Shown here one piece after another: positions 4,280 to 31,225 of a DNA stretch of 31,225 nt. The notes below the pieces were generated by a model. That model searched no databases, was not told where the DNA came from, and saw only the letters and a program-made list of their open reading frames with translations. Source of the stretch: Fonticula alba ATCC 38817 (Eukaryota; Protista; Nucleariida). Numbering within the stretch: position 1 is the stretch's first letter; each line of letters starts with the position of its first letter. A program made the position numbers and the translations under genes. The stretch is from NCBI GenBank assembly GCA_000388065.2, contig KB932201.1; one strand, written 5' to 3'.

Positions 4280-7200
4280 TCTCCCTCTCCCTCTCCCTCT
4301 CTCTCCCTGCTCTGTTGCACTGGCCTTCGTCTGACCCTCTTGCTGTCCTTCAGTTGATTGTGCCCCGTGCGATGTGGATGGCTGCATGCTGTGCGACACA
4401 TCCGGCCAGTGCCTGCGTTGCCGGCCGGGGCTGGTCCGCACGCCGGCTGGCGAGTGCGCCACCAACTGCCCGGACCCGGATGCCCCGGTGGTGGATGCCG
4501 TGTGCCAGACCCCGGAGCCCGCTGACACATGGATCAGCTCGGCCGAAGTCCAGGCCGACCCTTCGTGGGCCGGGTTCCGGGTGGTGGATGTGTCAACCCT
4601 GCGCGCGGTGGCCCAGGACGGCGCGGTGGAGGGGTCGCGTGCTGTGTCGACCACCTTCCCCACGCTGCATGTCCTGCAGCCGGAGTACCCGCATTTTGGC
4701 ACTTCGCAGAGTGTGTGGCTGCTTCCCCTGGCGCGTCTGCTTGCCGACGGTCGGCCGGCCACCTTCGGCCGTCTGGATCTGGTCAGTGCCTCCCAGTGGC
4801 TGGACGACGTATGCACCTTGGTGGCGAGTCCCGACGTGCAGTTGGCCGCCATCCAGCAGGATGCCGCTGGGGAGGATGAAACCCGGCCGCTGACGGCCCT
4901 TTCGGCCTCGGTGCTGCAGTCGAACCTCGGCGCCCTTCCGGGCGGCCAGAATGGGGACTTCGCAGCCGCCGGTGTGCCTGCCCCTTCCGGAAACGTCAAG
5001 CGCATTGGCATTGAACTTGTCGACCGGTCGATTCTCAACAAGCAGTACCTGCCCATCCGCCGGCCCTGGTTCTCGCAGCTGAGCCAGCCCTTCCCCTCGG
5101 CCGGCCTGGAGCCGGTGCCGACGATGACGCCCGACTCGCCGGTGCTTCACTTCCAACGGTCGATGGACTTCTTTTACGAGGTGATCGAGATGCACCCCAA
5201 CCCTCTGCAGGGATTTGACCCGCCGCCAGTGCTTCCGTCAGACTTCCGGACCTGCTCCATGAGCTGGGACCTGCTGCCGGCAAAGACCCGACTCACGGTC
5301 AAAGGGTCGCCGGAGCTGGCCAACATGTCTGGCAAGGCGACATGCACCATCCAGCGCGTGTGGGTTCCTTTCTCGGTGTCCGAGCTGTCCTTCCACCCGC
5401 GCCTGCCCGGGTGGTTCATCACTCATGATGCGCACATGATGCTTCGTCGTCCCACAACCCCGGGAGCCCGGCCGAGCGTGGTCATCCTGCTGTTTGTGAA
5501 GAAACAGCCCCCCGGGGTGACTGGGTGCCCTTTCCAGCTGCTGGAAGTGCCCCTGACTGCTGGGGCTTCCAGTTTGCCGGTATTCCGGTCGATCCAATCG
5601 TTCCTCACCATCTCGCCGGTTCTCTTCTTCGTGCGGGTCCCCTCGGTGCGGGACTTCAATCCGGATGCCTCGGCCTCCGGGCCGGGGGTTGTCGCGGTTG
5701 CCGGGCCCAACATGGTCAGCAACTCCCTCGCCGTGGCCCTGTCCCCGAATGAGCCCGCTGAGGTGGACCTGCAAATGGTTTCACTCAATCTGAGTGAAAA
5801 TGTCTTGCACATGGTCTTCGTCCGGACTGACGGCCTGCCCGACAGCATCATGGCCCTGCCATACCCCTGCTTGGCGCTGAAGCACGCCGACTGGAAGGAT
5901 GCTGCCCCGGGACATGGCTCGCCCGATCGAATGTGGCCCACCGATCGGCCGACCTATGGCTGCGCTCCGCTTTTGCTGGAAACCCGGGCCCTGGTCAGCG
6001 GCGGCCCCCATGGCCGGCCAGTGGTCCTGGCAAAGGACATGGACAGCGACGGGATGGACGATTTGCTGCTCCATTGGCCAGCCACTGGCCGAGTGGTGGT
6101 GTACTCCACACTGAACACGGTCCCCGTGACCTTCCGCCAGTCGATCATCTTCCCCGGGCAGGTGCCCGAATCTCCGTCGACCGCTGCCATGCAGTCGGTC
6201 GAGTACCCGGCGCTGGCCGATCCGCAGCTGCTGCTGGTGGATGTCGATGGCGATCGATTTGTGGATGTGGTCCTGCTGGACCAGGCGTCGCCCTCTGGGA
6301 CGCTTTCCGCCTCCAGCGCCCCGGTCCCGGTGATCCGGGTGTTCGGCCGGTCGGACCAGACCAGCAACTGGTGCCCGGCCGAGGTGGACTATGACCCGGT
6401 AGCCGGCGAGTGTGTCTGCCCCGGGCGTTTGCGGCACCTGACCCCCCTGTCGGATGCGTGCGAGTGCATCACGCACGCGGTGCCGGTGGCCCCGGGCGCG
6501 CCGGATTGCGTCTGCCCGGTGGGCATGGCCGAGGGGGTGGGGGCGTGTGTCTGCCAGCCGGGGCTGCTGCCGGTGGCGAGCGAGTCCACCGGGGCGCCGG
6601 TGTCTCCGCCCCGCTGCGAGACCTGCCATGCCAGCTGTGCCAGCTGCTCGGCCACGCGCTCCGGCCTGTGCGCCAGCTGCCCCCCGGGGCACTTCCTCCA
6701 GGCCGGCGTGTGTGTGACGGCCTGCGGGCCGGGGTTCACCATTTCGGCCGACGGCCGGGAGTGTATCGCCTGCGCGGCCTCCTGCTCGACCTGCCTGGGC
6801 CCGGCGTCCAACCAGTGCTCGGCGTGTGCCGGCAACCGGTACCTGCCCGGCGGCATGCCAGGCACGTGCCGGTCCTGCAATGCGGCCTGCTCCGGGTGCA
6901 CCGGCCCGGCGGCCTCCCAGTGCACGGTCTGTGCGACGGGCTGGCTGCGCGCGCCCTCGGGCGAGTGTGTGCGCACCTGTCCCGAGGGGACCGGGATTTC
7001 GTCTCCCGGGTCCAGCCAGTGCAAGGCCTGCGCCGATGCCGGATGTCTCTCCTGTGTGACGGCCCAGGCCGGGGCCATTTGCCGGGCCTGCCGAACGGGC
7101 CTGCAGATTGACGCCACCGGCAAGCAGTGTCTCCAGTGCCATGGGACCTGCGCCACGTGCGATGGCAACGGCCTGGCCAACTGCCTAACCTGCGCTCCGG

Positions 7201-10200
7201 GGCTTCTGCTCCATGGGTCTTCCTGTGTGGCCTCCTGCCCGGAGGGCACCTTCCCCGAGGCGGGGGCAGCCTGCTCGCGCTGCTCGGGACGCTGTGCCAC
7301 CTGTAGTGGCCCCCTGTCGACCCACTGCCTGACCTGCCCCCCGGAGTGGGTTCTTCAGGAGGATGGCACCTGCCTGCCGGATCCCTGTCCGACATGCGGC
7401 GACTGCGATGACATCGATTGCGAATCATGCAGCCCCGCCAACCCGGGCGTGTGCCTCATCTGCGCGGCCGGCAAGCTGCTGCTCCCGGATGGCACCTGCG
7501 TGGATGCCTGCCCCTCGGGCATGTACATGGCTCCCAGCGGGGACGCCTGCCTCCCCTGCCATGGGNNNNNNNNNNNNNNNNNNNNNNNNNNNNNNNNNNN
7601 NNNNNNNNNNNNNNNNNNNNNNNNNNNNNNNNNNNNNNNNNNNNNNNNNNNNNNNNNNNNNNNNNNNNNNNNNNNNNNNNNNNNNNNNNNNNNNNNNNNN
7701 NNNNNNNNNNNNNNNNNNNNNNNNNNNNNNNNNNNNNNNNNNNNNNNNNNNNNNNNNNNNNNNNNNNNNNNNNNNNNNNNNNNNNNNNNNNNNNNNNNNN
7801 NNNNNNNNNNNNNNNNNNNNNNNNNNNNNNNNNNNNNNNNNNNNNNNNNNNNNNNNNNNNNNNNNNNNNNNNNNNNNNNNNNNNNNNNNNNNNNNNNNNN
7901 NNNNNNNNNNNNNNNNNNNNNNNNNNNNNNNNNNNNNNNNNNNNNNNNNNNNNNNNNNNNNNNNNNNNNNNNNNNNNNNNNNNNNNNNNNNNNNNNNNNN
8001 NNNNNNNNNNNNNNNNNNNNNNNNNNNNNNNNNNNNNNNNNNNNNNNNNNNNNNNNNNNNNNNNNNNNNNGCTGCCGGCAGTGCCAGGACTCGCCGGGCT
8101 TCTGCACCCAGTGCCCGGCGGGCAAGCTCCTCGGCACAACGCCGGGCACGTGTGTGGACCGGTGCGGCGACCGGGAGTTCGCCGATCTGACCACTCCCTC
8201 GATGGCTCGCTGCGCGGCCTGCCACAACAGCTGCGCCTCCTGTGAGGGCGGCGCCAAGCCCGAGGACTGTACTGCCTGCTCGCCGGGCCTCTTCCTGCTG
8301 GCGGGCGTGGGCTGCGTGGGCGCCTGCCCGAGCGGGTACTTCGTTGAGGAGGGCCCGCTGGCCGGCTCCCAGGCATGCGCGCCCTGCGTGGCAGAGTGCG
8401 CCGAATGCACCGGGGCCGATGCCGGCCACTGCACGCGCTGCATGGATGATCGTCTGCTGATGGTGGGCTCCGGCTACTGCCGGCCCGTGGGCGAGGACAC
8501 CTGCCCGGCCGGGTGGCACGCGGATCTCCCCGGCCGGCGGTGTCTCCGTTGCCCGGATGGGTGCCTCGCGTGCCCGGCCTCGGTGGAGGACTGCGAGCAG
8601 TGCAGTGCCGACATGCGCTCGATCCGGCTGCTGGACCGCGAGGCGACGGACGCGGCGCCGGTCGGCTCCGGGCCGCGCACCTGCGTGGCCATGTGCCCTG
8701 GTGGGTGGTTCGCTCCCGAGGGCCAGGCTGACGTATGCTCGGCTTGCGACATGGCGTGTGGCACGTGCTCCGGCCCCGGGCCGGACGGGTGCCTGGAGCC
8801 GAATTGCGACCAGCCCGGCAGTTGCCCTAAGACGGGTATGTTTGTCGCCCTTATTTTCCTCCCCCCCCCCCGTGACGTATCATGTTGCGTTTGACTGACG
8901 ACCCCCCCCCCCTCCCCAGGCTCCCGCTCACTCGCACTGGCCATTGCCTTGCCGTTGGCGCTGCTCCTCCTGCTGCTGCTCATTTTGCTCCTGGTTCTTG
9001 TTCTTCTGCGGCGCCGGCGGCGCCACGCTGGCGCCAAGGAGGGCGACGCCATCCCAATGCAGTACATTGGCGATCCGGTGCGGTCTCGCTTGCTCGCTTC
9101 CACTCGTTTTGCCCTGATGCTGACCTCCCCTCCTCCCCTCCCTTCCCAATGCACGCGCCGCCTCGCAGGAGGACATGACCGTGATGAACACCATGCTCGG
9201 TACGATGGCAACAGCCCCCCGCCCGCCCTCCGGGCTCGGCCACATGCATATGCTCTCCTGTCGGCCTCCACTGACATCCCCCCCCCCCCAATTAGAACTG
9301 TCTCTCCCGGGACACTTGCTTCTCAACCCCGAGGTGGACTACCGCATTGAGCCCGGCTGCGAGGAGCTCGGCAAAGGCGCTCAAGCGGTGGTCCTGCCGT
9401 GCACATTGCTACGTGCGGACCTTTGTACGGCGGCCGGCGGCGATGCCGGTGCTGTGAAGATGGTTCCAACCGGTGCGCATGCCCTCACAGCGCTCGGATT
9501 TCCGATCCCCCTGCTGACCCCCACATGCCTGGTAGACTCGCCCTTCCGCACGCAATTCGAGCCGCTGCTCGACCAAGAAATTGCCATCCTCAGCATCCTG
9601 CTGGCCGACGGGGGGTCGCCATTTGTGTGCCAGCTGGTTGGCTACTCGGCTGCCCCGAGCAAGGCCCTGGTGATGCCCCACTACCCGGGGCTCCTGTCGG
9701 ACCTGCTTTGGCCCTCTCGCTTGAGCCCGGCGCAGACCCTGCAAATGGCCGCCGACATTGGTGCGCATGTGACCCTGCGTGCCTGACATCCCCCCCCCCC
9801 CTGCCCCCTGTGGCACGGTGCACTGACCGACTACCTCCCCGCGCGCAGCGGCCGGCATGGCGTTCATCCACTCGCGCGGCGTGGTGCACAAGGACCTGAA
9901 GCCGGAGAACATCTTCCTCCGGCCGGATCCGGCGGACCCCGGCCGCCTGCAGCCGGTCATCGGGGACTTTGGCGTGGCGCTGGTTCTCAACCGGTTCTCC
10001 GTCATCCCGACGCTGGGTAATGTGGCGGCCGGCAGCTTGCCATACGCCTCGCCGGAGACGCTGGCCCGGCTGTACGGCATGACCTTCCCGCTGGCGCCAT
10101 CCGACAGCAGCGTGGTCTCCCTGCTGAAGGTGGACATCTACTCGCTCGGTGTGCTGCTCTTCGGCTTGGTGGCGGCGGCGCGCCCCTGGACCGGTACGCT

Positions 10201-10218
10201 TTCCCCGCCTCTCTCCCT

Positions 10219-10255
<37 letters not shown>

Positions 10256-10559
10256 GCTCTTTCTCCTGCTTCATTCAGGGGCTTATCGTGACTGACGTGA
10301 CCATCTAGGCACTGGTTCGGATGATGTTGCCACTGCGGTGCTGGCCGGCAAGCGGCCGGACATGAATCCCTCTTCTGGAACCCCGGTCCCGGTGTTGGTG
10401 GGCGACACGGGCAGCGAGCCGGCCTGGATGGCGGAGTATCGTCAGATCTACCGCGAGGCATGGGCGGCCGATCCTCGCGAACGCCCGTCGGCGGCCAAGC
10501 TGGCGGCCACGTTGATTGATCTCGCTGAGAGAGAGTCTCCTGCGGTCAGTCCATCATAG
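701..10559 (+). CDS. Giant single-pass receptor-like Ser/Thr (TKL-type) kinase with FG-GAP/VCBS-like DxDxDG modules and furin-like Cys-rich repeats (paralog 1); exons 701-2273, 2439-4034, 4354-8835, 8920-9077, 9169-9199, 9296-9472, 9536-9760, 9849-10193, 10309-10559
   Basis: All 8 introns are GT..AG with a CTGAC-type branch point, and splice phases join into one frame (~2,950 aa including the N-gap 7566-8070). Signal peptide (MTARAC...LLACLLLLAHV), six DxDxDG motifs, ~12 visible CxxxCxxC furin-like units, TM LALAIALPLALLLLLLILLLVLVLL followed by RRRRR, kinase motifs GKGAQA, AVK, alphaC E, HKDLKPEN, DFG, SPE, DIYSLG; stop TAG 10557-10559. Confidence 0.9.
2439..4034 (+). CDS. Paralog 1 exon 2: furin-like repeat, module B (DADGDG) and Cys linker
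   Basis: Acceptor CAG 2436-2438 after a CTGAC branch; donor GTGCGT at 4035; colinear with paralog 2 exon 2. Confidence 0.85.
4057..4305. repeat. (CT)n/(CCT)n microsatellite inside intron 2 of paralog 1
   Basis: About 250 bp of almost pure C/T low-complexity repeat; source of the spurious SL- and ER-rich ORFs. Confidence 0.95.
4354..8835 (+). CDS. Paralog 1 exon 3: module C (DMDSDG, DVDGDR) and long furin-like Cys-rich stalk, interrupted by N-gap 7566-8070
   Basis: Open frame from acceptor CAG 4351-4353 to donor GTATGT at 8836; dense CxxxCxxC..CxxC periodicity from ~6620. Confidence 0.85.
8920..10559 (+). CDS. Paralog 1 exons 4-9: transmembrane helix, juxtamembrane region and protein kinase domain
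   Basis: Hydrophobic ~25-mer plus RRRRR stop-transfer; spliced kinase has all catalytic motifs; the K..EN catalytic loop indicates Ser/Thr rather than Tyr specificity. Confidence 0.9.
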
Positions 10560-12924: not shown

Positions 12925-13007
12925 GCTGCGAAGCTCGGAGCGAGGGGAGTCCGGGGCGAAAAGCGTGAAAAGGTAAATACCCTATCGACGGGCGGAATCC
13001 CATGCGT

Positions 13008-13079
13008 GGGAGATTAGTCTAGTGGTATGATTCTCGCTTAGGGTGCGAGAGGTCCCGGGTTCGATTCCCGGATCTCCCC
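13008..13079 (+). tRNA. tRNA-Pro (anticodon AGG)
   Basis: 72-nt cloverleaf: acceptor stem GGGAGAT/ATCTCCC, anticodon arm CTCGC-TTAGGGT-GCGAG, T arm CCGGG-TTCGATT-CCCGG; A and B boxes present. Confidence 0.96.
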
Positions 13080-13080
13080 G

Positions 13081-13088
13081 TTTCTTTT
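13081..13088 (+). terminator. RNA polymerase III oligo-T terminator of tRNA-Pro(AGG)
   Basis: TTTCTTTT immediately 3' of the tRNA. Confidence 0.6.
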
Positions 13089-14141
13089 GGCCCCCNNNNN
13101 NNNNNNNNNNNNNNNNNNNNNNNNNNNNNNNNNNNNNNNNNNNNNNNNNNNNNNNNNNNNNNNNNNNNNNNNNNNNNNNNNNNNNNNNNNNNNNNNNNNN
13201 NNNNNNNNNNNNNNNNNNNNNNNNNNNNNNNNNNNNNNNNNNNNNNNNNNNNNNNNNNNNNNNNNNNNNNNNNNNNCCCCCCCCCGGCGATGGGCCCCGG
13301 GGGAGCCCCCACACCCAAGGGGCCCTGCGTCGGGAAGAGCCGCCGGCGAGGGCAGGCCCCCGCCCGGTCAGCCCGACGGCCAGCCGGCTTGAGGCCTCCC
13401 CCCTCGGACGCGTCTTTTTTCCCACCGAGCACGGCTTTGCCCACTTTGCCGCACAGCCACTCTTCCCCCGGACCATGCTGCCAACTTGCCTGGCTCCCGA
13501 CAGCATTCAGCCGCTCGATATAGGCCTGCCCAGCCCTCACGCTCAGGGGGTGCGGCTCCCAGCCAGTCGCATGTTTCCCCCATCTCCCCGATCAGGCGTC
13601 GCCCGGCCGCTGCGAGCCAAGTCCGGGCGAACCCCTGCAACAGGCCGGGTGCTACGCAAGCAGCCCCCGAGGGAGGACAAAGACACGCCGGGGTCTGGCC
13701 GCGGGGCCTCCCCAGGCGCAGACTGCTCGGACGGCCGTGGCAGGTCGGGTGGCAAGGGGCCGCCCTCCGGGGAGCGCCGTGAGCGTGCGGCTGGGCACAG
13801 GTGCACCAGAGATGGCCTCGGTGTCGCTGCCAGGGCCATGCATGCATGCATGCTCGCTGGGACTATCTTGCCGCATGGCCCACAATCGCTTTGCATGCTT
13901 GATCGGCTGGTGAATGTGCCCTGGTGTGAGCCTGTGCCATCGTCGGCGGAAGTCGATCGGCCTCGCTGTGGCATCGGCTTGCCCTCGAGTGGTGTGTGGG
14001 GCTGCCACGCCGGTGGCCGGCAGCCCGGGCCCCAGCCGGAGATGGAAATCTCCCGGCCCTTTGGCCGAGATCGAGCTCCGGCCGGCCGGGTCACGCGGGC
14101 TGCGCACATGGTCGTGATTCGGCCAGAGGCCAGGCCGGCTG

Positions 14142-14569
14142 TGTAGTGGAATCCCAAACTCCGTAAACCAAATCACCTTTGAGTTACAAACTGCACGTGC
14201 GGGATACCCCGTAACATATGTGACATTCTAAACGGCGTTCCTCCATAGAGGAACACGGCGACTGCCTAGCGGCCGCCTTTCCCGGGCCTGTGTACAGGAG
14301 CCCGAGAGAGGGACGGACGTTCGCGCGTGTGCGGAGTTCTCAGATCTGCCCCTTTTGACCGAGCCAAAGGTCAAAAGGGGGACTCCCTCCGGGAGCCTCC
14401 TGAGAATGAAGGCCTTGGCAGCTGTGTGTGTCGAAGAGCATGCGAGAGCATCGCTGAGAGCACCAGTCCAGCCCGCGAAGACCTGTTCTAAGGCTGCCTC
14501 TCGAGCCCCCTTTTCATTTATTTTATTTTATTCCTTCTTCCGTTCGCCCGCCAACTCGTCTCAGGCCGA

Positions 14570-14611
<42 letters not shown>

Positions 14612-14757
14612 TCCAGGCGACAGTATATTCCCTGGCTCGGTACGCCCTCTACTTCATGCCCCAGAGTGCCCCCTACCCGGCGGCAGATTTCCGATATGGC
14701 TCCCGTCAAAGCATCACTCCTTTGCCGAAAGACCGGACCCGTGAGAACCCTGCTACA
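14142..14757 (+). repeat. Full-length LTR (616 bp, LTR-A)
   Basis: Starts TGTAG, ends CTACA; first ~125 bp and last ~36 bp recur directly at 20477-20641; the body recurs inverted at 20646 to beyond 21030. Confidence 0.88.
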
Positions 14758-16829: not shown

Positions 16830-19800
16830 TGTACAGGAAACTGTGCTCCATGAGCGTTCTGGATACAGGCCACGGGCATAGCATTCGCTTCGACGAGTGT
16901 GCGGGGACACTCTGCTCCGACTGAGGTATGACTCAGGAGCCCTGGGGTTGAACGCCATCCCCCATAGTCTCGTCCAAGCTTTTGGGTTGGATATTGCAAG
17001 AAGAGTCCAGTCATGATCCGACTGGCCGACGGTACTGAGATTGCCGCGATCGGGGAGGTGCAGTTGACCTTGCACTGTGGAGGCAAGACTGCTCGAGGCA
17101 GGTTCGTAGTTTTGGCTGCCGCTGGTGGCGAGGTGTTTCTGGGGTTGCACACTATGCAGAAAGTCTGGCCGGAGCGTTGGTCGTGGTGGACCGACGAGGT
17201 TTCCACGGAACCTGTGGCTTTCTGGCAGCCGGCCCGCACCGCGGGACCAGAGAACCCCTCGTACGCCGTGGTACTGCGGTCCGCCGGGGAAGTCGACGAG
17301 ATGCGGACTCGTACGCAAGAGGCAGGGCACTGCGTCCATCCCCCGTGGATGAAGTACCTCGAAATGGTCCGTGCGGCACAAGGGCGGCTCCCCAAGTCCC
17401 AGGGGGTCGCCCCTATCCGGATCAAGCTCAGACCGGACGTCGTGTTGCCGCCGTTCCACAATCGCCGGTTTACCCCGGTAGAGCAGGCTGACATCGAGGA
17501 GTGGGTGCTGGGCGCACTCAAGTCAGGACTCACCACCGAGACGCATGTTGATCAGTGAGCGGCTCCGTTGGTTGGCGTGCGAGTGCCCGGGAAGAAGACA
17601 CGCTGGTGCGTGGATCTCCGGGGCCTGGACGCACCGGTGGAGACCTTCAGCCTTCCCATGCTGGTGGCTGACGAGGCACTGACCAAGGCCGGGAAGGGAA
17701 GGTGGTTCACTTCACTGGACCTGGCAGAGGCCTGCCATCATGTGTCGAGGTCCACCCGGAGGATCGGCACCTGCTGATCTTCGTTGCCAACAAGAAGTAG
17801 TACCACTTCAAGCGGATGCCCTTCGGCTACCGGAATGCGTCGCATCACTGCAACGCCGCGATGGATAACATCCTCGCCCCGGCGCGCAAGTGCGCCATCT
17901 GGTATCTCGATGATATCCTGATCTTTTCTGAGACGCAGCAAGAGCATGTTCGACCGGTTCGCGCCGTGCTGGAGCTCCTAGCTAAGGCAGGGGCCAGTAT
18001 TCGCGCCGGGAAATGCCTCTTCATGGTGTCAACTGTGAAGTTTCTCGGGCATCGCTTGGGAGGCGGTGTGCTTGATTGGACTCAGGATCGGATGGCCGCC
18101 CTGAGCGAATACGAGAAGCCAGCCACCATTCGCCAACTTCGATCTTTCTTGAGTGCACTGAGCTACGTCGTGAGATGGCTGCCGCTGGCTGCTTGCGAGT
18201 TGGCCCCGCTCAACGAGTTGTTCCTCGGCAAGTCTCCGCGAGCCAATAATCGGATCACTTGGACCGAGAAGCTCGATACTCATTTTGACAAGGCCAAGAG
18301 ACTGGCGAGGAACTCGCAAGCCCTCGCCCTGCCTCGGGAAGACGAACCCTACACCATGGCCACGGACGCCTCGGATTTTGGCATGGGGGCCGTCCTTTTG
18401 CAGGAGTCTAAAGGCGACCGGGACCTATCGGGCCGGACCCTGCTGAAGCCGGTTGCGTATTGGAGTCGGAAGCTCAGCCCGGCCGAGCGCAACCACAGTA
18501 CCTGCGAGAAGGGGTTTCCTGCACTTGTGGGCGCCCTGCGCCAATGGCGCCACAAAGTGGAGAATGGCGAACCGCTGACGGTGTTGACCGACCATCAGCC
18601 ACTCCTCCGTTGGGCCGTCCAGCAGGAGCCCAAGCAGCGTGTGCAACGCTGGAGCTGGGAGCTAGCTACCTTCCAAAAACCGCAGCTTGTTCACCAGCCC
18701 GGCGTGCTCAATGTGGTGGCGGACGGGCTGTCTCGCCTGCGAGATGAACCGCCATCCAAAGCTGGCCAGGCCGCGATCCGGCCGTCTCTCTTCAGCCACC
18801 CGTACTTGCGGTGGACCACCAAGGAAGACATCCGCGGCGGGTTAGGCTCTATGACGCGGGTGGACGCTCCTTCGTGGATGAGTCGGCTGATCAACCAGCA
18901 GAAAGTATGCGCTGCTGGCCGTCCCGACCGGAAGCTAGGGGACCATAACGGCATCCTGTATTTCGAGGATCGGATTTACCTTCCCGAGAGTATGATCTTG
19001 GAGGTACTGGAGCACATCCACGACTCGACGGTGTACGGCCATCCCGGGCGGGAGGCCACCATCAAGCTGGTGTGCGACCGATTCGCCAGTGAGCGGCTGC
19101 GGCAATACGTCCCGGAGTATGTCCGGACTTGCGCGAATTGCCAAGCCCTCAAGGCTAGAAACCGCAAGCCTCTAGCGAACCCCAGGGAGCCGGGCGTTGT
19201 CGCGGGCAGGCCCCTGGAGGTAGCTTCGCTAGATGTGCTTTCAGCTTTGCCAGACGACCTCGAATGCGAAGCCTTGTTGGTGATCGTGGATCAGCTTTCG
19301 CGATACACCTGGGTAAGCGTATGCAGCTTGTCTGTCGTGGACGACATACGACTTTTACAAGCAGCTCTGTACGAATGTCGACCCATGGGGCCCGTTCCCC
19401 AAAGTGGTGAATTCGGACGGAGGCCCGACGTTCCGTTCTGGAGAGTGGAGCCTTCTGCTGGCTCGCAAGGGGTGTGTCCCGGGGGTCTCCACCCCCCAAC
19501 CACCCGATGTCCAACGGGGCAGCCGAACGGGCGATTGGCATTCTACCGCAGCACATTCGGATCGCCCGGGCGACTTCCTGGAAGGACCGGAAGCACGCAG
19601 GAAGAGCCATCGTTCGAGCGGCAGCCGCGTTGAACCGTGTTCCGGTATCCTTCTTGGGGTACAGTCCGGAGTACATCATTGCTGGGTACGGCTCCGATGT
19701 CTCCGAGATGGGAGCCATCCCGACCACCAGGAAGGCACACAAGGAGATGCTAGAGGAGGTGAAGGGACGTAATGCGGCCCAGGGCAATCGCGTTGTCGAG

Positions 19801-20645: not shown

Positions 20646-21184
20646 TGTAGCAGGGTTCACACGGGTTAAGCCTAAGTCAAGTGAGTGAAGCTTGACGAAG
20701 GGTACCAGTGTGATCTGCCACCCGGTTAGTAACCTCTAGGCATGAATAAAGGGAACATACCAACCAGCGGTTCACGGTCGTCTGTTTCCAGAGTGAGTCA
20801 GTAACTCGGTTTGAGTCGAGTTAGTGGCAAGCGAAATAGAAAGAGAAACTCGAATAAATAAAAGGGGTTCGAGAGGAAGCCTTAGAACAGGTGTTCGTCG
20901 ACTTGACTGGTGTTTCAGCTATACTTTCGTATACTCTTCGACACACAGCTGCTAAGGTCTTCACTCTCGGGAGGTCCCTTGCGGGAGCCCCCCTTTTGAC
21001 CTTTGGGATAGGTCAAGGGGTGGATCTGAGAACCCCGCGGTGGGACTTGTCCCCCCCGCGTATCTCCACGCTCGGTCGAGCGCCTACATCGCTCGACCTC
21101 GCCGGGCCACCTGGGCCGTTATCCAACCCCGCATTCTCGATCAAGAGAATGCTATTGGAACTTTGTCCTTCTTTGGTTTAACAC
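20646..21184 (-). mobile_element. Inverted LTR of a related subfamily (LTR-C), probably solo, running into an N-gap
   Basis: Begins TGTAGCAGGGTTC, the reverse complement of the LTR-A end; 20860-21035 is clearly the reverse complement of 14335-14530; diverged elsewhere. Confidence 0.82.
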
Positions 21185-22842
21185 NNNNNNNNNNNNNNNN
21201 NNNNNNNNNNNNNNNNNNNNNNNNNNNNNNNNNNNNNNNNNNNNNNNNNNNNNNNNNNNNNNNNNNNNNNNNNNNNNNNNNNNNNNNNNNNNNNNNNNNN
21301 NNNNNNNNNNNNNNNNNNNNNNNNNNNNNNNNNNNNNNNNNNNNNNNNNNNNNNNNNNNNNNNNNNNNNNNNNNNNNNNNNNNNNNNNNNNNNNNNNNNN
21401 NNNNNNNNNNNNNNNNNNNNNNNNNNNNNNNNNNNNNNNNNNNNNNNNNNNNNNNNNNNNNNNNNNNNNNNNNNNNNNNNNNNNNNNNNNNNNNNNNNNN
21501 NNNNNNNNNNNNNNNNNNNNNNNNNNNNNNNNNNNNNNNNNNNNNNNNNNNNNNNNNNNNNNNNNNNNNNNNNNNNNNNNNNNNNNNNNNNNNNNNNNNN
21601 NNNNNNNNNNNNNNNNNNNNNNNNNNNNNNNNNNNNNNNNNNNNNNNNNNNNNNNNNNNNNNNNNNNNNNNNNNNNNNNNNNNNNNNNNNNNNNNNNNNN
21701 NNNNNNNNNNNNNNNNNNNNNNNNNNNNNNNNNNNNNNNNNNNNNNNNNNNNNNNNNNNNNNNNNNNNNNNNNNNNNNNNNNNNNNNNNNNNNNNNNNNN
21801 NNNNNNNNNNNNNNNNNNNNNNNNNNNNNNNNNNNNNNNNNNNNNNNNNNNNNNNNNNNNNNNNNNNNNNNNNNNNNNNNNNNNNNNNNNNNNNNNNNNN
21901 NNNNNNNNNNNNNNNNNNNNNNNNNNNNNNNNNNNNNNNNNNNNNNNNNNNNNNNNNNNNNNNNNNNNNNNNNNNNNNNNNNNNNNNNNNNNNNNNNNNN
22001 NNNNNNNNNNNNNNNNNNNNNNNNNNNNNNNNNNNNNNNNNNNNNNNNNNNNNNNNNNNNNNNNNNNNNNNNNNNNNNNNNNNNNNNNNNNNNNNNNNNN
22101 NNNNNNNNNNNNNNAGGGGGTGGGAGAAGCGCGTCCCTCTGTTGTCGGCCGTCTCGGCTCTTCGTGTGTTGCTGCCGCGCGTTGAGCCCGGCATATGGCC
22201 GGGTTCCTCGGGCCCCGAGCAGCGAACCGGAGCCAAGGCCGGAATGGTGCCGCAACCTGTACGTGGGGAGCCCTTGTATGTTGTTCCCCCCCTCCCCCCG
22301 GCGGAGTCAAACTCCTTTCATCATGCGCCCTCGTGGGGCCGAGGGTGCCCTCTCGCCGCGTGTGTGCGGTCTCCTGGGCCCCTGGCGTGGGGGCGCCCTG
22401 AAATGTGCGTCGTGTGGGTGTGTTGGTGAACGGCCGCGCACCCCGAAGCCGGCATGGCCCGGGTCTGGAGCACACACACCGGTCGGGCCACGGGGGGGGG
22501 GGGGGGGCCGGAGCACTAGGGGGCATCTCTCCTGGCCGAACGGAATGACGCCACATGGTGTGGGATTGGCGCAGCGGCACACCGCCCGGGCCTGGGCGGC
22601 GCTGGCCCGACATTTTGTTCCCCCCCCCCCCCCTGCACGGGGGGGGGCATTTTCCGTCCCTGCCCCGGTTGCCGTCTCTTGCCTAGAGGGGGGGGGGGCC
22701 GCCGCCCCCTGTGGCACGGGGGGGATGCTCCGGCGGTGTTTGGGCCACGAGCGGAGCGAGTGTGGGCCACACGCCGCGGAAGCTCTCCGGCCCAAAACCG
22801 CAACAGATAAAAGCCAATAGCCGGACGCCCTCTAACAAGTGT

Positions 22843-22914
22843 GGGAGATTAGTCTAGTGGTATGATTCTCGCTTCGGGTGCGAGAGGTCCCGAGTTCGAT
22901 TCCCGGATCTCCCC
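22843..22914 (+). tRNA. tRNA-Pro (anticodon CGG)
   Basis: Identical to 13008-13079 except the anticodon first base (C, 22875) and one T-stem base (A, 22893, giving an A-C mismatch). Confidence 0.93.
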
Positions 22915-22919
22915 ATGTC

Positions 22920-22924
22920 TTTTT
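22920..22924 (+). terminator. RNA polymerase III oligo-T terminator of tRNA-Pro(CGG)
   Basis: T5 run 6 nt downstream of the tRNA. Confidence 0.65.
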
Positions 22925-23919: not shown

Positions 23920-26900
23920 ATGCCAGCCAGCTTGTGGTACCTGGCCGCCGGCCGGCGGCTGCCACTTCTTCTGGGCTGTGTGCTTCTCCTTCTCCGGCTT
24001 GCGGCTGGCAAGGCCTCTCAACAGGCCGCCTCCGGGCCGCCTGTGCTGCCGCGCTTTCACACTCTCGTGCAGCTCGCAGATCCAGGCGCCACTCCGGCCA
24101 ATGCGCGGGATAACATCCAATTTTGCGACTTCTTCGATGCCCGGTCTCTTCAGCCCAACCTGGCTGACGGGTTTGATGATCTGTCCTACATGTCCAGTTT
24201 CTTCAATGTGGCCACCTCGCCTCTTGCCCGGGCCGGGCAGCCGTCCAGCCGGCCGCGGGAATTCATCCACGGCCCGGCCTACTCGCCGCACAGATGTCAC
24301 TCATATCCCTTTGCCCGGGAGCCGGCGGCCCCCTTCCGCATGGAGCCGGATCGCCTTTCGGCGCTGAACCCCGTGCTCACCGAGGCCTTTTCCTATGGCC
24401 GGTCCCTCCTCCATCGCGCGCACGACCACTTGGTGGATGGCCTTTACACGTTTGACCCTATGCGGCTGGTGCTCGGCACCACGGCCGCCGGTAGCCCCTT
24501 CGCCCTGCAGGCTCGAGTCCAATATGACGGCCTGGAGTTCATGTTCCTCGAGGAGAACAACTTCCCCAGCCACCACTTCATGCTTGAATATGAGGGCTTC
24601 AACTTCCTGCAGCCGACCGACCTCGACGGCGATGGCCTCGTGGATGCGGTGACCGTCGCTTGGCTGGCGGACATCATCGCCGTTGACACCGGCCATCCCG
24701 CCCCCCATGCCCATGGGGCCAGCAATGGCAGCCCTGCCAGCGATTCCGAGTCCATGGTGGCAGCCACCCCGACGTCTCCTCCCGCGCGTACCGGCGAGCA
24801 TGGGCTCTTTTGGCTCCATCGCTTCGGCGAAGCGGCCCTGGCACCCGGCAACCCGGCTGACGTGACCCTGCTGATGACCCTGCCGGATGACATCGAAGTG
24901 GGTCAGATCCTGATCGGGGACTTCGATGGGGATGGCCTGGCGTCCGATGTGGCGGTGCTTTCCGGCCGCGATTCCACCGGCCCGGCTCGCATCATCCTCC
25001 TATTGACATCCGACCTGTCGGCCCCGGTGACCATCCTCCTGGCGGACATGTCCTTCGATGACCCGGCGCTGGTTTCCCTTTCGAGCCTCGATCACACCCC
25101 GAAGGCGGCCGCCGCGCGGCTCACCGCCACCACCGGCACCGGCACCGCCACCACCCCGGCCGACGATCTGGTGGTGGCCTTCGGCTCGCGGGTGTGGCTC
25201 ATCCCCGGCCCCATCCGGCCGACCGGCAGCCCGGTGACCCATGACATCTTGGCGCTCAATTCGGTGCCCCTGCTGCCGGATCACCCAAGCACCTCGGGCG
25301 TCTGGTATTCATTGGCATTCGGGGATTTCGACGCCGATGGCCACCTGGACCTGGCCCTTGCCCATTCGGACACCGTCAATGACATCCTGCTTCTGAGCCA
25401 GGTGCACGCCACGCCGAGGTGTCTGTGTGGGCCCGGGGGCATCTGCCAGCGCGACCCGACCAGCTTCTATAGCCTTCCCTCCTGCGCGTGCGAGGACCCG
25501 CATGCCGATCTCGGCTTCAAGCTGGCCCCGTGTGAGTTTTGCCAAGTCGGCTACTTCCGGCAGACGGGTAGGTCTTGCCTTTCTCTCCGCTCTTCTGCCT
25601 CTGCCTCTTCTCCTGCTCCATCTCGGCCCCCTGCCCCGGCCTGGCCATTGACTCAAACGCCAACACCGTTCACACTCAATCAGAGAGCTCCCCCTGCCAG
25701 CAGTGCAGCGCTAGCTGTCTCACTTGTGCTGGTCCTGGCATGTCGGATTGCCTCAGCTGCCAGCCTGGCTTCGTTTTCGAATCTTCCCCGCTCCCGACCG
25801 GGCTCTGCGTGCCAGACACCACAGGCAACCAGGTGGTGGTGACCTTCCCGGACCCCGAAAGGCCGTACTATCAAGCCACCTCGGAGATTGACTTGACCAT
25901 TGGCTTCCATGTGGTGCCTTTCAACCTGCATTCGACACTGCAAAAAACCCAAACGCTTGTGGAGCTCCGGCTGCAGGAGCTCTTCACCATGCCCACCAGT
26001 AAGCCGACCCTGGTTCAGGGCATCAACCATGGGAATGGGCATGTCATCTTCCATGAAGATCGCCTTGGCGGGCACTTGCTCCACTCGAGGCTCAGCCTCG
26101 CCATCAATCGGGTCACCGTCTCGGGCCCCGCCGGTTCGATTGACATGTTCCTCCTCGGCGATCGGGGGGATGTCTGCATCGCCGAGCCGGGCAAGCCCTG
26201 TGCCCGGTTCCAGACCCAGTGGGTGAGCTGGCTGCACAATGCCCACCTGGGCCGCGTGGCCCCTCGGCCGACTCCCGGGGACCCTCCCTTTGTGGGCATT
26301 CTCTCCAATGGTCACCTTGGCACGCGGCAAGTGGTTGACTCTCACATTCACAGCGCCATCTGGCTGCAGGTCGACAACAATCTAGACCTCGACTCGGTGG
26401 TTGTCCTCCATTCGCCCCCCTCCGGCCCGTCGAAAGAGTGTCACCTTGGTTGGCAGCCACGCTTGGCCATTGACATCTTCTCCTATACCTACCCGATGAC
26501 GGCCGAGAACTTGCTCCCCCATACGCTTCCCTGTGGGCAGCTTCTTGGTCTCCCGGCTGTCGATCCTGCCACTCGGCCCCCGCTGCTGCTGGTGGTGACG
26601 GAGCCGGCCGCCGGCGAGGCGTTCGTGTACCTGCTGCGGAACCGCGGCCGCGGGAGCGACTTCCGCCCGCACTTTGACGCCCCGGTGCCGCTGTTGACCG
26701 GGGCCAACCTCGGCCACAAGACTGGCCACTCGCCAAGCAGGGTCCTGGCGACCCTGGACCCCACGGATCTGACGGCCACCGAGGCGGCGCTCTTCCTCTG
26801 GGACGGGACTTGGGTCTTCCGCGTGGTGCTACGCCAGCACGTTCCCCCGGGAGCCGGCCACTCGGACTCTGTCACTGTGCTGGTGGAGCCGCTGGTTCCG

Positions 26901-27303
26901 CGGACTTCCTTCTCGTGGCTCTCCTCCGCCAGCAACCTGGTCCTGATGCCGCTGGATGCCGATGGTGATGGGGTGGCCGAGCTGGTCATTTTCATCCCCA
27001 CCGGCTTGATGACGCTCTTCCGCCGGAGCTCCGAGCAAAATGGCTGCGGCTGCGGTCGGCTCGGTGTCTGCACCATTCCAAGCAGCTGGTCCGCCTCCCG
27101 GTGCGATGGGCCCGCAGCCGACAGCTCCTGTGTCTATGAGCCGACGGCCCTGCGGACGTCGGATCTCTGCGCCTGCGCCCCGGGATTCCAATCTCCAGCC
27201 GGTGGGTCGTCCGGTCTCTGTACGATGTGTGACTCCTCCGCCAGCGGGGGTTTCCCGCCAGAATTCGGCGGTGCGTGCCACCTGGCTCCCTGTGCCCTTC
27301 CCC

Positions 27304-27342
<39 letters not shown>

Positions 27343-30300
27343 ACATGGCCTCCCTTCGCCCTTCTGACATGCCCTCGCGCCCTTGGCCCCGTTTTCTTTG
27401 GGCGGGGGCTTCTTTTCGTCCCTTCGGCAGTCGATTGTGATGCCTGCTCGGTTGAGGGCTGCTACCTGTGCGATGCCTCGGGCGAGTGCCTGCGCTGCCG
27501 GCCGGGGCTGGTTCGTACGCCGACCGGGGGCTGTGCCCCGACCTGCCCGGACCCGGATGCACCGGTGGCGGACGCTGTCTGCCAGGCCCGGGACCCATCC
27601 GACATGTGGATCAGCTCGGCCGAGATCCCCGCACACCCCTCCTGGGCCGGTGCCAGGCTGGTCGATGTGTCGACTTTGCGCTTCGTGCACCAATCCAACA
27701 CCCCCCCGGGCACACGCGCCGCGGCCACCACCTTCCCCACGCTGCACGTTCTGCCGCCGAATGCCGTGGACTCGGACACCGTGTGGTTGCTGCCGGCCGC
27801 TCGGCTGTTGGCCGACGGCCGGCCGGCTGACTTTGGCCAGCTGCATCTGCCAGCCGCGGCTGCCTGGCTGGCGAACACCTGCCACCTTGAGGGGGTGGTC
27901 CTGCCGGCGGCCGACCACAAAGGCCCGGCCGCCGAGGATGTCGATGATGGAGCCGACGCCGGCCCAGCCATGGGGATGGCCTCGCCGGGGCCGCTGGCCC
28001 GGCTGTCGGGTCGTCCCCCGGGAGTCCCCCGGGCCTCGGGCGGGGACTTCACCGTGGCCGCAGTGTCCCAGCCGCGGCAGTTGGTTGATCATTCGGGGGT
28101 GGATATGGTCCCGTGGTCGGTCCTGAATCGGGGCGAATTCCCCGTTCCGCGGCCGTGGTTTGCGCGGCTGGCCGAGCCCTTCCCCGGGTTCGGCGAAGAG
28201 CCCGGGCCTACTCCAACGCCGCCGGTGTATTCGCAGATGTTCCACTTCCAGCGGCAACTCAACTCCTTTTACATGGTCGCCGAAATGGAGCCTGTGTTGT
28301 TTGCCCCGGCGCCCAGGGTGGACCCGTCGGACTTCCGAACGTGCACCCTGGCCAACACCATGGAGGAGGCGGCCACCCGTTTGACTGTGTACCAATCGCC
28401 GGAGCTCCAAGACCTCCGGGGTCAGCCATACTGCTCTTACTCTCGGATTTGGGTTTCCCTCCCAGCATGGGAGCTCTCCATGGTGCCGGGCCAGCAGTCC
28501 TGGTCCATGTCCCTGTCGACCATTGTCTTGCTGCATCGGCCCTCGAACGGCGAGCGTCCCAGCCTGGTTGTCCTCACCCGAGAGGAGGCATATCGCGCGG
28601 ATCAAACCGGCTGCCATTATCGCTCACTCCGGGTACCGCTGGTGGCCGGGGCGCCGGCCTTGCCCATCATCCCTCCGAGCCCCTCCCTGGCGAGCATCGT
28701 GTCGCTGCCCATCTTCCTACATGTGGCGTCGGTGCAGGAGGTCCACCCCGCCGCGGGGATCGCCGGGCCTGGCATCATTGCCGTCGGGGAGCATCCGTAC
28801 ATTGCCAACCGCTTGGTTGTGGCTCTGTCCCCCAGCGAGCCGAGCCCGGTGAATCTTCAATTCGCCTTGATGAGGCTGCTCGAGGATATGCCGTATCTGG
28901 TTTTCGTGCGGACCGACAATCTGGCGGACAGCATCATGGCCATGTCGACCGAGTGTCTGGTGGAAAACCACAAAAACTGGCAGATGCCTTCTGCCCCGGG
29001 CCCTGTGCTCCCGGAGTGGGCGTGGCCCACCACTCGGCCGCTGTATGGCTGCGCTCCGGTCTTGCTGGAAACCCGGCCGCTGGATGGCCATGGCCCGCAC
29101 GGCCGGCCGACCGTCCATTCCCGGGACATGGATGGTGATGGCTTGGACGACTTGGTGCTCCACTGGCCGACGACCAACCGCCTGGTGGTGTACTACACGC
29201 AGGTCACTGCGCCCCTTTCCTTCCGGCAGACGGTCATCCTGCCGGGAAATCCGCAGGATTCCCTGGGCACGCAGGCGGTCGAGGACCCGGCCCTGCTGAC
29301 CCCGCAGCTGTTCTTGGCGGATGTTGATGGGGATCGCTTTGTTGACATCCTGCTCTTCGACCAAGCTGCCCCGGCCGGCGTGCGTTCCTCCACTCCCTCG
29401 GGCCCGGTGCTGCGGCTGTTCGGCCGGTCGGACCAGACCAGCAACTGGTGCCCGGCCGAGGTGGACTATGACCCGGTGACGGATGAGTGCGTGTGTCGCG
29501 GGCGCTTGCGGCACCTGACCCCCCTGTCGGATGCGTGCGAGTGCATCACGCACGCGGTGCCGGTGGCCCCGGGCGCGCCGGATTGCGTCTGCCCGGTGGG
29601 NNNNNNNNNNNNNNNNNNNNNNNNNNNNNNNNNNNNNNNNNNNNNNNNNNNNNNNNNNNNNNNNNNNNNNNNNNNNNNNNNNNNNNNNNNNNNNNNNNNN
29701 NNNNNNNNNNNNNNNNNNNNNNNNNNNNNNNNNNNNNNNNNNNNNNNNNNNNNNNNNNNNNNNNNNNNNNNNNNNNNNNNNNNNNNNNNNNNNNNNNNNN
29801 NNNNNNNNNNNNNNNNNNNNNNNNNNNNNNNNNNNNNNNNNNNNNNNNNNNNNNNNNNNNNNNNNNNNNNNNNNNNNNNNNNNNNNNNNNNNNNNNNNNN
29901 NNNNNNNNNNNNNNNNNNNNNNNNNNNNNNNNNNNNNNNNNNNNNNNNNNNNNNNNNNNNNNNNNNNNNNNNNNNNNNNNNNNNNNNNNNNNNNNNNNNN
30001 NNNNNNNNNNNNNNNNNNNNNNNNNNNNNNNNNNNNNNNNNNNNNNNNNNNNNNNNNNNNNNNNNNNNNNNNNNNNNNNNNNNNNNNNNNNNNNNNNNNN
30101 NNNNNNNNNNNNNNNNNNNNNNNNNNNNNNNNNNNNNNNNNNNNNNNNNNNNNNNNNNNNNNNNNNNNNNNNNNNNNNNNNNNNNNNNNNNNNNNNNNNN
30201 NNNNNNNNNNNNNNNNNNNNNNNNNNNNNNNNNNNNNNNNNNNNNNNNNNNNNNNNNNNNNNNNNNNNNNNNNNNNNNNNNNNNNNNNNNNNNNNNNNNN

Positions 30301-31225
30301 NNNNNNNNNNNNNNNNNNNNNNNNNNNNNNNNNNNNNNNNNNNNNNNNNNNNNNNNNNNNNNNNNNNNNNNNNNNNNNNNNNNNNNNNNNNNNNNNNNNN
30401 NNNNNNNNNNNNNNNNNNNNNNNNNNNNNNNNNNNNNNNNNNNNNNNNNNNNNNNNNNNNNNNNNNNNNNNNNNNNNNNNNNNNNNNNNNNNNNNNNNNN
30501 NNNNNNNNNNNNNNNNNNNNNNNNNNNNNNNNNNNCATGGGACCTGTGCGGAGTGCTCCTCGCACCGGTCGAACTCCTGCACCGCCTGCCCGGGGGCCCA
30601 TGTTCTGGACCGCGGGTACTGCCGCGAGGCATGTCCGCGACTTGGCTTCTTCGAGGAGGCCAAAACATGCCGGGCATGTCACTCATCGTGCCTTTCCTGC
30701 ACCGGGCCCGGGGCCGGGCAGTGTGAGCTCTGCCCTCGGACCCATCTTTTCCGCGACTCCCACTGCCTGGATGGGTGCCCGCCCGGGAGCACGCCCCTGG
30801 CCGGCGAGTGCGCCGAATGTGCCGCCACCTGCCTGGACTGCGCCGGGCCCGAGGCCAGCCAGTGTACCGCTTGCGGCCCCGCCATGCCGAGTCTCTGGAA
30901 TGGCTCCTGCCTGGAGACCTGCCCAGCTGGGACCTTCCCCGGGTCGGATCCCAGCACTTCGGACACGTGTCTATTGTGCTCTTCGCTGTGTCTCGAGTGC
31001 GCCGGCCTGGCCAGTAACCAGTGCGCCGAGTGCGCCGGGGATCTGCTGCTGCACCCGGTGTATGGGTGCGCTTCGGCCTGTGGCACCGGCTTCCTGGAGG
31101 CCCAGGGCCAGTGCGTGACTTGTCACTCCAGCTGCCGGCAGTGCCAGGACTCGCCGGGCTTCTGCACCCAGTGCCCGGCGGGCAAGCTCCTCGGCACAAC
31201 GCCGGGCACGTGTGTGGACCGGTGC
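23920..31225 (+). CDS. Paralog 2 of the FG-GAP/furin-repeat receptor-like kinase, 3' truncated by the window; exons 23920-25567, 25684-27270, 27431->31225
   Basis: Signal peptide (MPASLWYL...LLLGCVLLLLRLAAG); the same six DxDxDG motifs; the same two phase-1 intron positions; furin-like repeats continue in frame after gap 29601-30535. TM and kinase are not visible and are inferred from paralog 1. Confidence 0.88.

Follow-up and report, generated by a model that had tools for sequence, protein, structure and literature searches.

The fugu Pcdh2 and zebrafish protocadherin clusters are among the described systems closest to the locus analyzed here. Neighboring genes in these clusters are diverged in their 5' part, which encodes the distal ectodomain, and exceed 99% nucleotide identity in their 3' region; this pattern has been ascribed to repeated regional gene conversion, and GC3 is raised in the converted part (PMC1852091). 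Among aggregating amoebae, the tgrB1/tgrC1 genes of Dictyostelium encode surface proteins and belong to a gene family that duplicates and recombines (PMC12745789). A further process bears on how repeated sequence of this kind is represented in draft genomes: ALLPATHS-LG builds unipaths at K = 96 and glues together any perfect repeat at least K bases long, and scaffolding of the ALLPATHS-LG type avoids links into repeats (PMC3483556).

Here we analyzed a window of 31,225 nucleotides from Fonticula alba ATCC 38817 (contig KB932201.1) containing two genes, paralog 1 and paralog 2, that lie on the same strand and belong to a family of giant receptor kinases specific to this lineage. The two genes lie 23 kb apart and have the same architecture (Table 1). 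Like the teleost protocadherins, they are tandem surface receptors with diverged 5' and apparently identical 3' regions and close partners; a modest rise in GC3 is confounded by amino-acid composition. Unlike protocadherins, they combine a kinase with FG-GAP modules and furin-like repeats, Pfam detected no cadherin domain, and no constant exon is shared; their identity falls into two tracts split by a diverged transmembrane (TM) segment, and the host is a protist. In addition, near-identity of the protocadherins was read from clones, whereas here it is deduced from assembly collapse. The likeness to clustered protocadherins lies in evolutionary dynamics only.

Table 1. Coordinates of the features discussed in the text; position 1 is the first base of the window.
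Feature	Position	Strand	Remarks
Paralog 1 gene	about 701..10559	+	signal peptide, three FG-GAP-type head modules, furin-like Cys-rich stalk, TM helix, protein kinase
Paralog 1 head	701..6340	+	codon alignment with paralog 2
60-base exact match at head-stalk junction	6341-6400 = 29418-29477	+	60/60, synonymous sites included
Diverged patch	6401..6428	+	28 bases, 10 mismatches to paralog 2; same as C3 save one base
First common 95-mer	6429-6523 = 29506-29600	+	95/95; ends at left edge of gap 29601
Stalk piece R1	6524..7565	+	counterpart of paralog 2 gap 29601-30535; once in assembly
Gap in paralog 1	7566..8070	.	505 N; true fill is contig X without its overlaps (589 bases, frame kept)
Distal stalk, paralog 1	8071..8815	+	both terminal 95-mers common to paralog 2
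Diverged segment, paralog 1	8816..9606	+	end of stalk exon, pre-TM intron, TM helix, juxtamembrane region, first kinase exons
Kinase core, second glued tract	9607..10455	+	flanking exact matches; paralog 2 has a gap here
tRNA-Pro (AGG) gene	13008..13079	+	ARAGORN; Rfam tRNA 58.5 bits
Retrotransposon pol ORF	17816..19633	+	Pfam RVT_1, RT_RNaseH, RT_RNaseH_2, Integrase_H2C2
tRNA-Pro (CGG) gene	22843..22914	+	ARAGORN, Rfam; about 1 kb upstream of paralog 2
Paralog 2 gene	23920..31225, running on past window end	+	open frames; Pfam FG-GAP
Paralog 2 head-stalk junction	29418..29600	+	60 identical, 28 diverged, then 95-mer up to gap
Gap in paralog 2	29601..30535	.	935 N; counterpart is paralog 1 6524-7559, 1036 bases
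Contig X	30536..31225	+	690-base stalk piece between two gaps; weak VSP, GF_recep_IV (Pfam)

Paralog 1 has short, CT-rich introns and long open frames at 539-4354 and 4335-8891. A Pfam scan of the head and stalk pieces returned FG-GAP_3 and FG-GAP together with weak Furin-like_2, GF_recep_IV and VSP matches, the furin-like matches in the stalk scoring below the Pfam cut-offs. The kinase was matched at 9827-10288 (Pkinase, E=1e-16), and its HKDLKPEN motif is of the Ser/Thr type. In coordinates continued beyond the window, paralog 2 ends at a stop near 34560 and has its own TM helix and its own C-terminal tail; the kinase exons are separate in each gene. The FG-GAP calcium-loop repeats of the heads recall integrin alpha subunits, and the Cys-rich, furin-like region followed by a TM helix and kinase recalls receptors of the EGFR/insulin-receptor type, although here all parts lie on one chain with three head modules, sub-cut-off furin-like matches and a Ser/Thr-type kinase; the likeness is architectural only. 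We found no literature on this receptor-kinase family. Between the paralogs lie two tRNA genes and a retrotransposon with reverse transcriptase, RNase H and an integrase zinc-binding domain. A repeat of about 80 bases at 13006-13088 and 22841-22923, also present on scaffolds C20 and C3, was considered as a family-linked element and ruled out, as it corresponds to multi-copy tRNA-Pro genes; an argument from spacing, by which the start of C20 mirrors the paralog 2 locus, was therefore dropped.

The original prediction described three perfect nucleotide identities between the two genes, and all three are exact (60/60, 95/95 and 95/95), the last of them (8071-8165 = 31131-31225) running right up to the window end, which coincides exactly with the start of a further gap of 1300 N. 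Continuing the window coordinates into the adjoining sequence, we found two more exact 95-base matches, 8721-8815 = 32526-32620, with which the next paralog 2 contig opens, and 9607-9701 = 33439-33533, as well as a 54-base identity at 10402-10455 directly after the paralog 2 gap 33534-34408. The assembled bases in the common tracts thus show zero differences over 60+95+95+95+95+54 positions. Since identity in the flanks is 58-78%, a chance origin of the 95-base runs is excluded (P below 1e-10). The identity is interrupted, however, between the stalk tract and the kinase tract: base-by-base alignment showed that paralog 1 8816-9606 is truly diverged from the paralog 2 contig 32526-33533 over 790 bases, and its intron sequence is unalignable. 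At 6341-6400, the C3 copy differs by one base.

The window contains N runs at 606-651, 7566-8070, 13096-13276, 21185-22114 and 29601-30535. The gaps of the two genes had been described as complementary, and this was confirmed: contig X, although placed in paralog 2, can be inserted into the paralog 1 gap with the frame preserved, collinear with what is seen in four other paralogs. It shares 6 bases with 7560-7565 and 95 bases with 8071-8165, and the left flank of the gap ends in frame with CAT GGG, the same two codons with which contig X opens. Homologs of 6524-7565, contig X and the sequence from 8071 onward form one unbroken stretch in the C3, C6, C13 and C18 paralogs, with no indel at the junction. 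Therefore, the true fill of 7566-8070 keeps the frame and is 589 bases long. Filling 29601-30535 with 6524-7559 likewise keeps the frame, whereas the 935 N as written break it. Gap estimates compare with predicted fills as 505/589, 935/1036 and 875/700, but the 1300-N gap stands against only 555 bases predicted from paralog 1.

A whole-genome DNA search of the 31-Mb assembly showed that 6341-7565 and 30536-31225 match only themselves at 100%. The next-best copies of R1 are in C3 (92%) and C20 (88%), and over R1 and contig X together the next-best values are 92%, 88% and 80%. No internal nucleotide repeats were found in 6524-8894, and such repeats are hence not the cause of the contig breaks. 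The C20 copy is an island contig of 867 bases (C20:7127-7993) that is 88% identical to 6696-7565. Its last 95 bases equal the last 95 bases of R1 (7471-7565), and the R1 contig stops at 7565 because of this shared end. The island could be the real paralog 2 version of part of the stalk, in which case the identity would be a patchwork and not uniform.

Six gap edges in this locus share exactly 95 bases with another copy; across 11 family loci, the count is 11 of 66 edges. Where other edges have an anchored copy of at least 30 bases, its length is scattered (31-54, 78, 92, 150 and 187). Paralog 2 contigs stop exactly at the first or last common 95-mer at four separate edges. We read the recurring figure of 95 as the K-1 overlap of an assembler working with K=96 unipaths, and not as the length of a tract. 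We found no literature naming the assembler of this genome, nor a long-read assembly of F. alba; the public assembly presumably came from a center that used ALLPATHS-LG. As expected of K=96 unipath collapse, contigs here end in exactly the 95 bases (K-1) that the other copy has as well, but not every contig start conforms: three starts after gaps share just 6, 39 and 54 bases and are unexplained by a simple K-1 model. Also unlike plain K=96 collapse, the glued piece X sits in the other locus, which gives the gaps their reciprocal look. The proposal that the stalk is a near-identical repeat glued by the assembler is supported, each piece being present once in the assembly; a correction concerns the 95-base lengths, which we take as assembler overlaps and not as tract lengths. 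Likewise, the stalk does appear homogenized, but not the stalk alone, as the kinase core was glued too and a diverged TM/juxtamembrane segment lies between them.

The heads of the two genes are old paralogs. They differ as heavily as had been claimed, with 47-59% amino-acid identity, a dS of 0.91-1.06 and a dN/dS of 0.33-0.49 in the codon alignment; along the gene, dS is 0.7-1.0 up to about position 6340. Across head windows, dN/dS was 0.2-0.9 and never above 1 in this comparison of paralogs from one genome; the suggestion that the head is diversifying is thus not borne out, the divergence being old. The paralog 1 head is 83-97% identical to C3 in most 100-base windows, as against 36-76% to paralog 2, and some head blocks of paralog 1 and C3 are homogenized in patches. 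Head module 2 was left out of the codon alignment of paralog 1 and C3 on account of a gap in C3 that left just 38 codons aligned. The head blocks that do diverge between paralog 1 and C3 also have high dS and therefore look like old mosaic pieces rather than fast-evolving sites.

Before the head-stalk junction, dS between the two paralogs is about 1, and beyond it the assembled common tracts show no difference even at synonymous sites. This jump indicates recent exchange rather than constraint on the protein, as originally proposed, and the incongruence with C3 points the same way: at 6435-6523, paralog 1 equals paralog 2 at 89/89 positions and C3 at 85/89 (just four informative sites), although its head is nearer to C3. 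Regional conversion is, for this reason, the best reading. The succession of three tracts (60 bases, stalk, kinase) with diverged sequence between them (a patch of 28 bases, then the segment of 790 bases) forms a mosaic, and mosaic blocks likewise occur in the C20 island and in the comparison of paralog 1 with C3. GC3 is 0.82-0.88 in the stalk, 0.88 in the kinase exon and 0.77-0.82 in the heads, a modest difference that is confounded by amino-acid composition. An independent tandem pair on C18 has the same pattern with the same head-stalk boundary, C19 has similar gap-edge signatures, and in at least five family loci a gap begins 183-733 bases after the head-stalk junction.

We consider it probable (roughly 0.7) that the stalk and kinase core were recently made identical, or nearly so, by ectopic conversion between tandem neighbors and then glued at K=96. 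Conversion would have homogenized a first tract of about 2.5 kb in the stalk (6429-8815 with contig X inserted) and a second of about 0.85 kb in the kinase core (9607-10455), probably halting at the head-stalk junction, where identity collapses. A de Bruijn or unipath assembler with K=96 would then glue perfect repeats of at least 96 bases and keep one copy per tract; each glued piece would be assigned to one locus and the other locus given a gap of estimated length, with contigs stopping K-1 = 95 bases into the common sequence. Such gluing would account for the identities of exactly 95 bases as well as for the complementarity of the gaps. From the behavior of the assembler, we infer that paralog 2 is nearly identical to paralog 1 over the gap-covered stretches as well, along the full 2.5 kb; conversion as the mechanism, like the reason for the tract boundary, is deduced from the pattern of identity. 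The case is one of real but fairly ordinary concerted evolution, overlaid with an assembly artifact.

An unlikely alternative to conversion is that a copy of the 3' half of paralog 1 came to lie behind an older head through a recent partial duplication or an unequal crossover, the TM region being replaced later. The tandem, same-strand arrangement of the genes, the sharp onset of identity at a domain boundary within one giant exon, and blocks of 700-820 bases that other family loci share across scaffolds at 93-97% identity would all suit such an origin. However, it leaves the 790-base diverged segment and paralog 2's own C-terminal tail to be explained, and therefore needs at least two further events. 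Moreover, the 60 identical and 28 diverged bases that precede the identical tract at the boundary are typical of heteroduplex repair, and the same boundary is seen again in the C18 pair.

Slightly harder to sustain is the view that the pattern is an artifact only, in which the paralog 2 stalk and kinase are unassembled but not near-identical to those of paralog 1, contig X is a misplaced piece of paralog 1, and the 95-mers are isolated conserved or converted patches. The sequence inside the paralog 2 gaps is indeed predicted and not read, contig X fits the paralog 1 gap perfectly, the 1300-N gap mismatches its predicted content, and the C20 island shows that part of the stalk also occurs as an 88% variant. 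Yet the diverged stalks of C3, C6, C13 and the C18 copy at 146 kb were assembled without trouble, and the assembly has no paralog-2-specific stalk contig above 92%, the C20 island possibly excepted. The ends of paralog 2 contigs at common 95-mers, on four edges, are also what gluing of a longer common sequence gives.

We regard as improbable a self/non-self or prey-recognition array in which diversifying selection acts on the heads while the shared stalk is held uniform. A surface receptor family that has many copies, strongly diverged heads and homogenized signaling parts would fit this view, but no head window exceeds a dN/dS of 1, dS is saturated, and the divergent head blocks of paralog 1 and C3 are high in dS too. 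The original prediction also drew an analogy to allorecognition by tgrB1/tgrC1, whose products likewise sit on the surface of an aggregating amoeba and come from a gene family that duplicates and recombines. This analogy found no support: the Pfam scan detected no IPT/TIG domain in any head or stalk piece, and no matched ligand-receptor gene pair was found at the locus, where the two genes are alike in architecture and strand. In addition, tgrB1/tgrC1 are defined by extreme polymorphism between strains, whereas the comparison here is between paralogs of one genome. The Tgr proteins form a polymorphic pair of ligand and receptor and are not known to carry a kinase. Finally, although the stalks of distant paralogs are somewhat better conserved (65-85%) than their heads (45-77%), strong purifying selection on stalk and kinase in place of exchange can be set aside almost entirely, as it is already contradicted by identity at synonymous sites, the same stalk has a dS of 0.02-0.5 to the C3 copy and is 15-35% different from others, and selection on protein cannot yield zero synonymous change beside a dS of about 1.

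These results mean that the glued stalks systematically break the gene models of this receptor-kinase family and that pieces of one family gene may sit within the gap of its neighbor; copy counts, domain counts and stalk or kinase trees are therefore misleading. A concrete set of loci is now identified for resolution with long reads. The dynamic matches that described for vertebrate protocadherin clusters and is by itself no sign of self/non-self recognition. It is conceivable, though we think it doubtful, that the family forms a recognition repertoire for kin, mates or bacterial prey, in which concerted evolution keeps one chassis of stalk and kinase core while many heads are maintained; if true, this would be a protist counterpart of protocadherin and immune-receptor logic, with the head-stalk boundary upheld by selection and not by mere loss of homology. 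Together, these observations describe, in a relative of fungi, lineage-specific surface receptors whose signaling parts evolve in concert while their heads stay diverged.

The original prediction held that two paralogs with divergent heads share base-identical stalk segments broken by reciprocal assembly gaps. They are receptor-kinase genes on the same strand, paralog 1 (701-10559) and paralog 2 (from 23920 past the window end). All three identities were exact (6341-6400 = 29418-29477, 60/60; 6429-6523 = 29506-29600, 95/95; 8071-8165 = 31131-31225, 95/95), with 10 mismatches in the 28 bases separating the first two, and the N runs lie at the predicted positions. Since the paralog loci elsewhere align patchily at 71-78%, the identical runs of 95 bases are not due to chance. 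The gap at 7566-8070 is preceded by the codons CAT GGG, which also begin, in frame, the stalk contig 30536-31225 (X); the last 95 bases of X are the sequence of 8071-8165. In searches of the whole genome, the counterparts of 6341-7565 and X adjoined each other on three other scaffolds carrying family sequence (C3, C6 and C13), again with a 5-6-base overlap. When 5800-7565, X and 8071-9000 were aligned with C3, C6, C13 and C18, the junction was free of indels, and 30 junction-spanning residues in the alignment of paralog 1 and X were identical to C3. Because these junctions are collinear, in frame and indel-free, X is, on sequence grounds, the content of the paralog 1 gap (589 bases for 505 N). 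Reciprocally, 6524-7559 (1036 bases) fits the paralog 2 gap (935 N) and restores the frame, so that this part of the prediction is borne out. Estimated N and predicted fill agree for three gaps (505/589, 935/1036 and 875/700) and disagree for one (1300/555). The latter, at 31226-32525 just past the window end, has more than twice the 555 bases of paralog 1; it may hold about five extra furin-like repeats in paralog 2, or may be poorly estimated.

For each gap edge, we determined the longest exact copy elsewhere that was anchored at that edge. It measured exactly 95 bases at six edges of the paralog locus (7565, 8071, 29600, 31225, 32526 and 33533) and 54 at another, with nothing at the remainder; the window end coincides with the start of the 1300-N gap. 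Across 11 family loci, exactly 95 bases were found at 11 of 66 edges, including pairs on C18, C19 and C28, and the other anchored copies of at least 30 bases at these edges had scattered lengths (31-54, 78, 92, 150 and 187). ALLPATHS-LG uses K=96 for its unipath graph, in which any perfect repeat at least K bases long is glued (PMC3483556). In an assembler of this type, which we take to have been used here, a unipath entering a glued repeat would stop K-1 = 95 bases inside it. Given such gluing and the edges of exactly 95, this length is an assembler constant and not a biological tract length. The edges nonetheless prove that paralog 2 reads pass, at four places, from a paralog-2-specific base into 95 or more bases that match paralog 1 exactly. 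Some contig starts fall off this pattern: X overlaps 7565 by 6 bases, and the overlap is 39 for an island on scaffold C20 and 54 for the contig at 34409.

Paralog 2 joins the common path at 6429 and exits at 8815. Its own contig, 32526-33533 (numbering continued into the next 20 kb of the scaffold), carries the pre-transmembrane intron, the transmembrane helix, the juxtamembrane region and the first kinase exons; compared with paralog 1, its introns are unalignable and identity is 86-93% towards the end. It rejoins the common path at 9607 and exits at about 10455, ahead of its own C-terminal tail. Each glued piece is present in a single copy in the assembly. As the diverged stalks of other members were assembled normally, the failure at paralog 2 is best explained by a stalk and kinase core near-identical to those of paralog 1. 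The predicted collapse and homogenisation thus hold for the stalk but do not describe the full extent, as the kinase core is glued too and the transmembrane segment is not.

The genome comprises 31.3 Mb in 214 scaffolds (65% G+C), and the window corresponds to C1:141095-172319. Both paralogs are encoded on the + strand in long open frames with hardly any introns, with FG-GAP repeats (Pfam) in the heads and cysteine-rich stalks with weak Pfam matches of furin-like, growth-factor-receptor and VSP type. The third family member, downstream of paralog 2, is 75% identical to 1827-2244 and to 6451-6716; examination of its gap edge turned up no exact tract in common with either of the two paralogs. 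A tRNA-Pro gene precedes paralog 2 by about 1 kb, and several near-identical copies also lie upstream of the C3 paralog. At the right end of the retrotransposon there is an inverted 79% match (14331-14574 against 21038-20801) and a 930-N gap. CT-rich microsatellite tracts (4055-4313, 2290-2395, 10209-10267, 14578-14610 and 27286-27343) are mostly found in short receptor-gene introns, except for 14578-14610, which is intergenic near the retrotransposon. Their frame stays open, encoding Ser-Leu repeats, and naive ORF calling therefore passes through the introns.

Features of the paralog locus and related loci (positions above 31225 continue the window numbering)
Feature	Position	Strand	Remarks
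Paralog 1 transmembrane helix and kinase exons	3' of stalk	+	Pkinase E=1e-16 at 9827-10288
Paralog 2 transmembrane helix, kinase start, C-terminal tail, stop codon	beyond window	+	paralog 2's own copies
Third family member	~36800-48525		starts ~5.5 kb past window end
tRNA-Pro genes (AGG and CGG anticodons)	13008-13079 and 22843-22914		between paralogs, flanking retrotransposon
Further tRNA-Pro copies	C3:3290044-3291901; C20:309-382		three copies on C3
Retrotransposon pol ORF	17816-19633, within 14300-21184		between paralogs; reverse transcriptase, RNase H, integrase zinc-binding domain
Exact 95-base gap-edge overlap	C18:9581-9675 = C18:29242-29336
Exact 95-base gap-edge overlap	C19:622-716 = C19:7926-8020
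Exact 95-base gap-edge overlap	C18:32261-32355 = C28:43318-43412

Between paralogs 1 and 2, the heads have a dS of 0.91-1.06 and a dN/dS of 0.33-0.49 (Nei-Gojobori), and zero differences begin abruptly, synonymous sites included. The head of paralog 1 is 83-97% identical to the C3 copy in most windows versus 36-76% to paralog 2; at 6435-6523, paralog 1 equals paralog 2 (89/89) and C3 matches at 85/89. Abrupt identity, its extension to synonymous sites and this incongruence are classical signs of interlocus gene conversion, which would account for the common stalk. Raised GC3 is another such sign; here it is 0.82-0.88 in the glued tracts and 0.77-0.82 in the heads, a modest difference that is confounded by amino-acid composition. 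The closest precedent for such a pair, with 5' parts diverged and 3' parts common, is the fugu protocadherin cluster, in which neighbours differ in their 5' parts and are >99% identical in their 3' parts, a pattern ascribed, together with a raised GC3, to gene conversion of a regional kind (PMC1852091); the F. alba proteins are unrelated to cadherins, so the likeness is one of dynamics and not of membership. The proposed resemblance to the tgrB1/tgrC1 allorecognition system, whose defining feature is polymorphism between strains (PMC12745789), found no support in the one genome compared: Pfam detected no IPT/TIG domain in the paralogs, and no paired ligand gene was found at their locus.

The proposal that the heads are diversifying was likewise unsupported: none of their 60-codon windows had a dN/dS >1. 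When paralog 1 was compared with C3, blocks with a dS of 0.02-0.3 alternated with blocks of dS ~1 in both head and stalk (for the head, window 653-6340 against G000:C3:3292594-3298400, with dS ~1 at, for example, 4785-5100 and 5325-5950), so that mosaic exchange is not confined to the stalk. The dN/dS of 0.3-0.7 in the divergent blocks points to old mosaic pieces rather than positively selected sites.

The start of C20 (G000:C20:1-29864) consists of three small contigs with gaps of 221, 5856 and 21871 N. Its island at 7127-7993 (867 bases) is a mosaic stalk fragment, 88% identical to paralog 1 and 85% to C3, that runs from C3-like through paralog-1-like to unlike both and ends on 95 bases equal to window 7471-7565; these final bases explain why the paralog 1 contig stops at 7565. 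Either the island is an additional family member, poorly assembled, at a third locus, or it is a misplaced paralog 2 version of 6696-7470. Further tandem members with glued stalks lie at G000:C18:3000-33023, C19:1-16721 and C28:43318-44080. The C18 tandem pair shows the full pattern again: its heads are 50-65% identical, rising to 89% over the last 430 bases before an exact 95-mer that borders the gap, at an edge corresponding to paralog 1 position 6471-6565. In five family loci the gap begins 183-733 bases past the head-stalk junction, and blocks of 700-820 bases that are 93-97% identical link C18, C19 and C28. Judged from these sequences, exchange between members is apparently a habit of the family.
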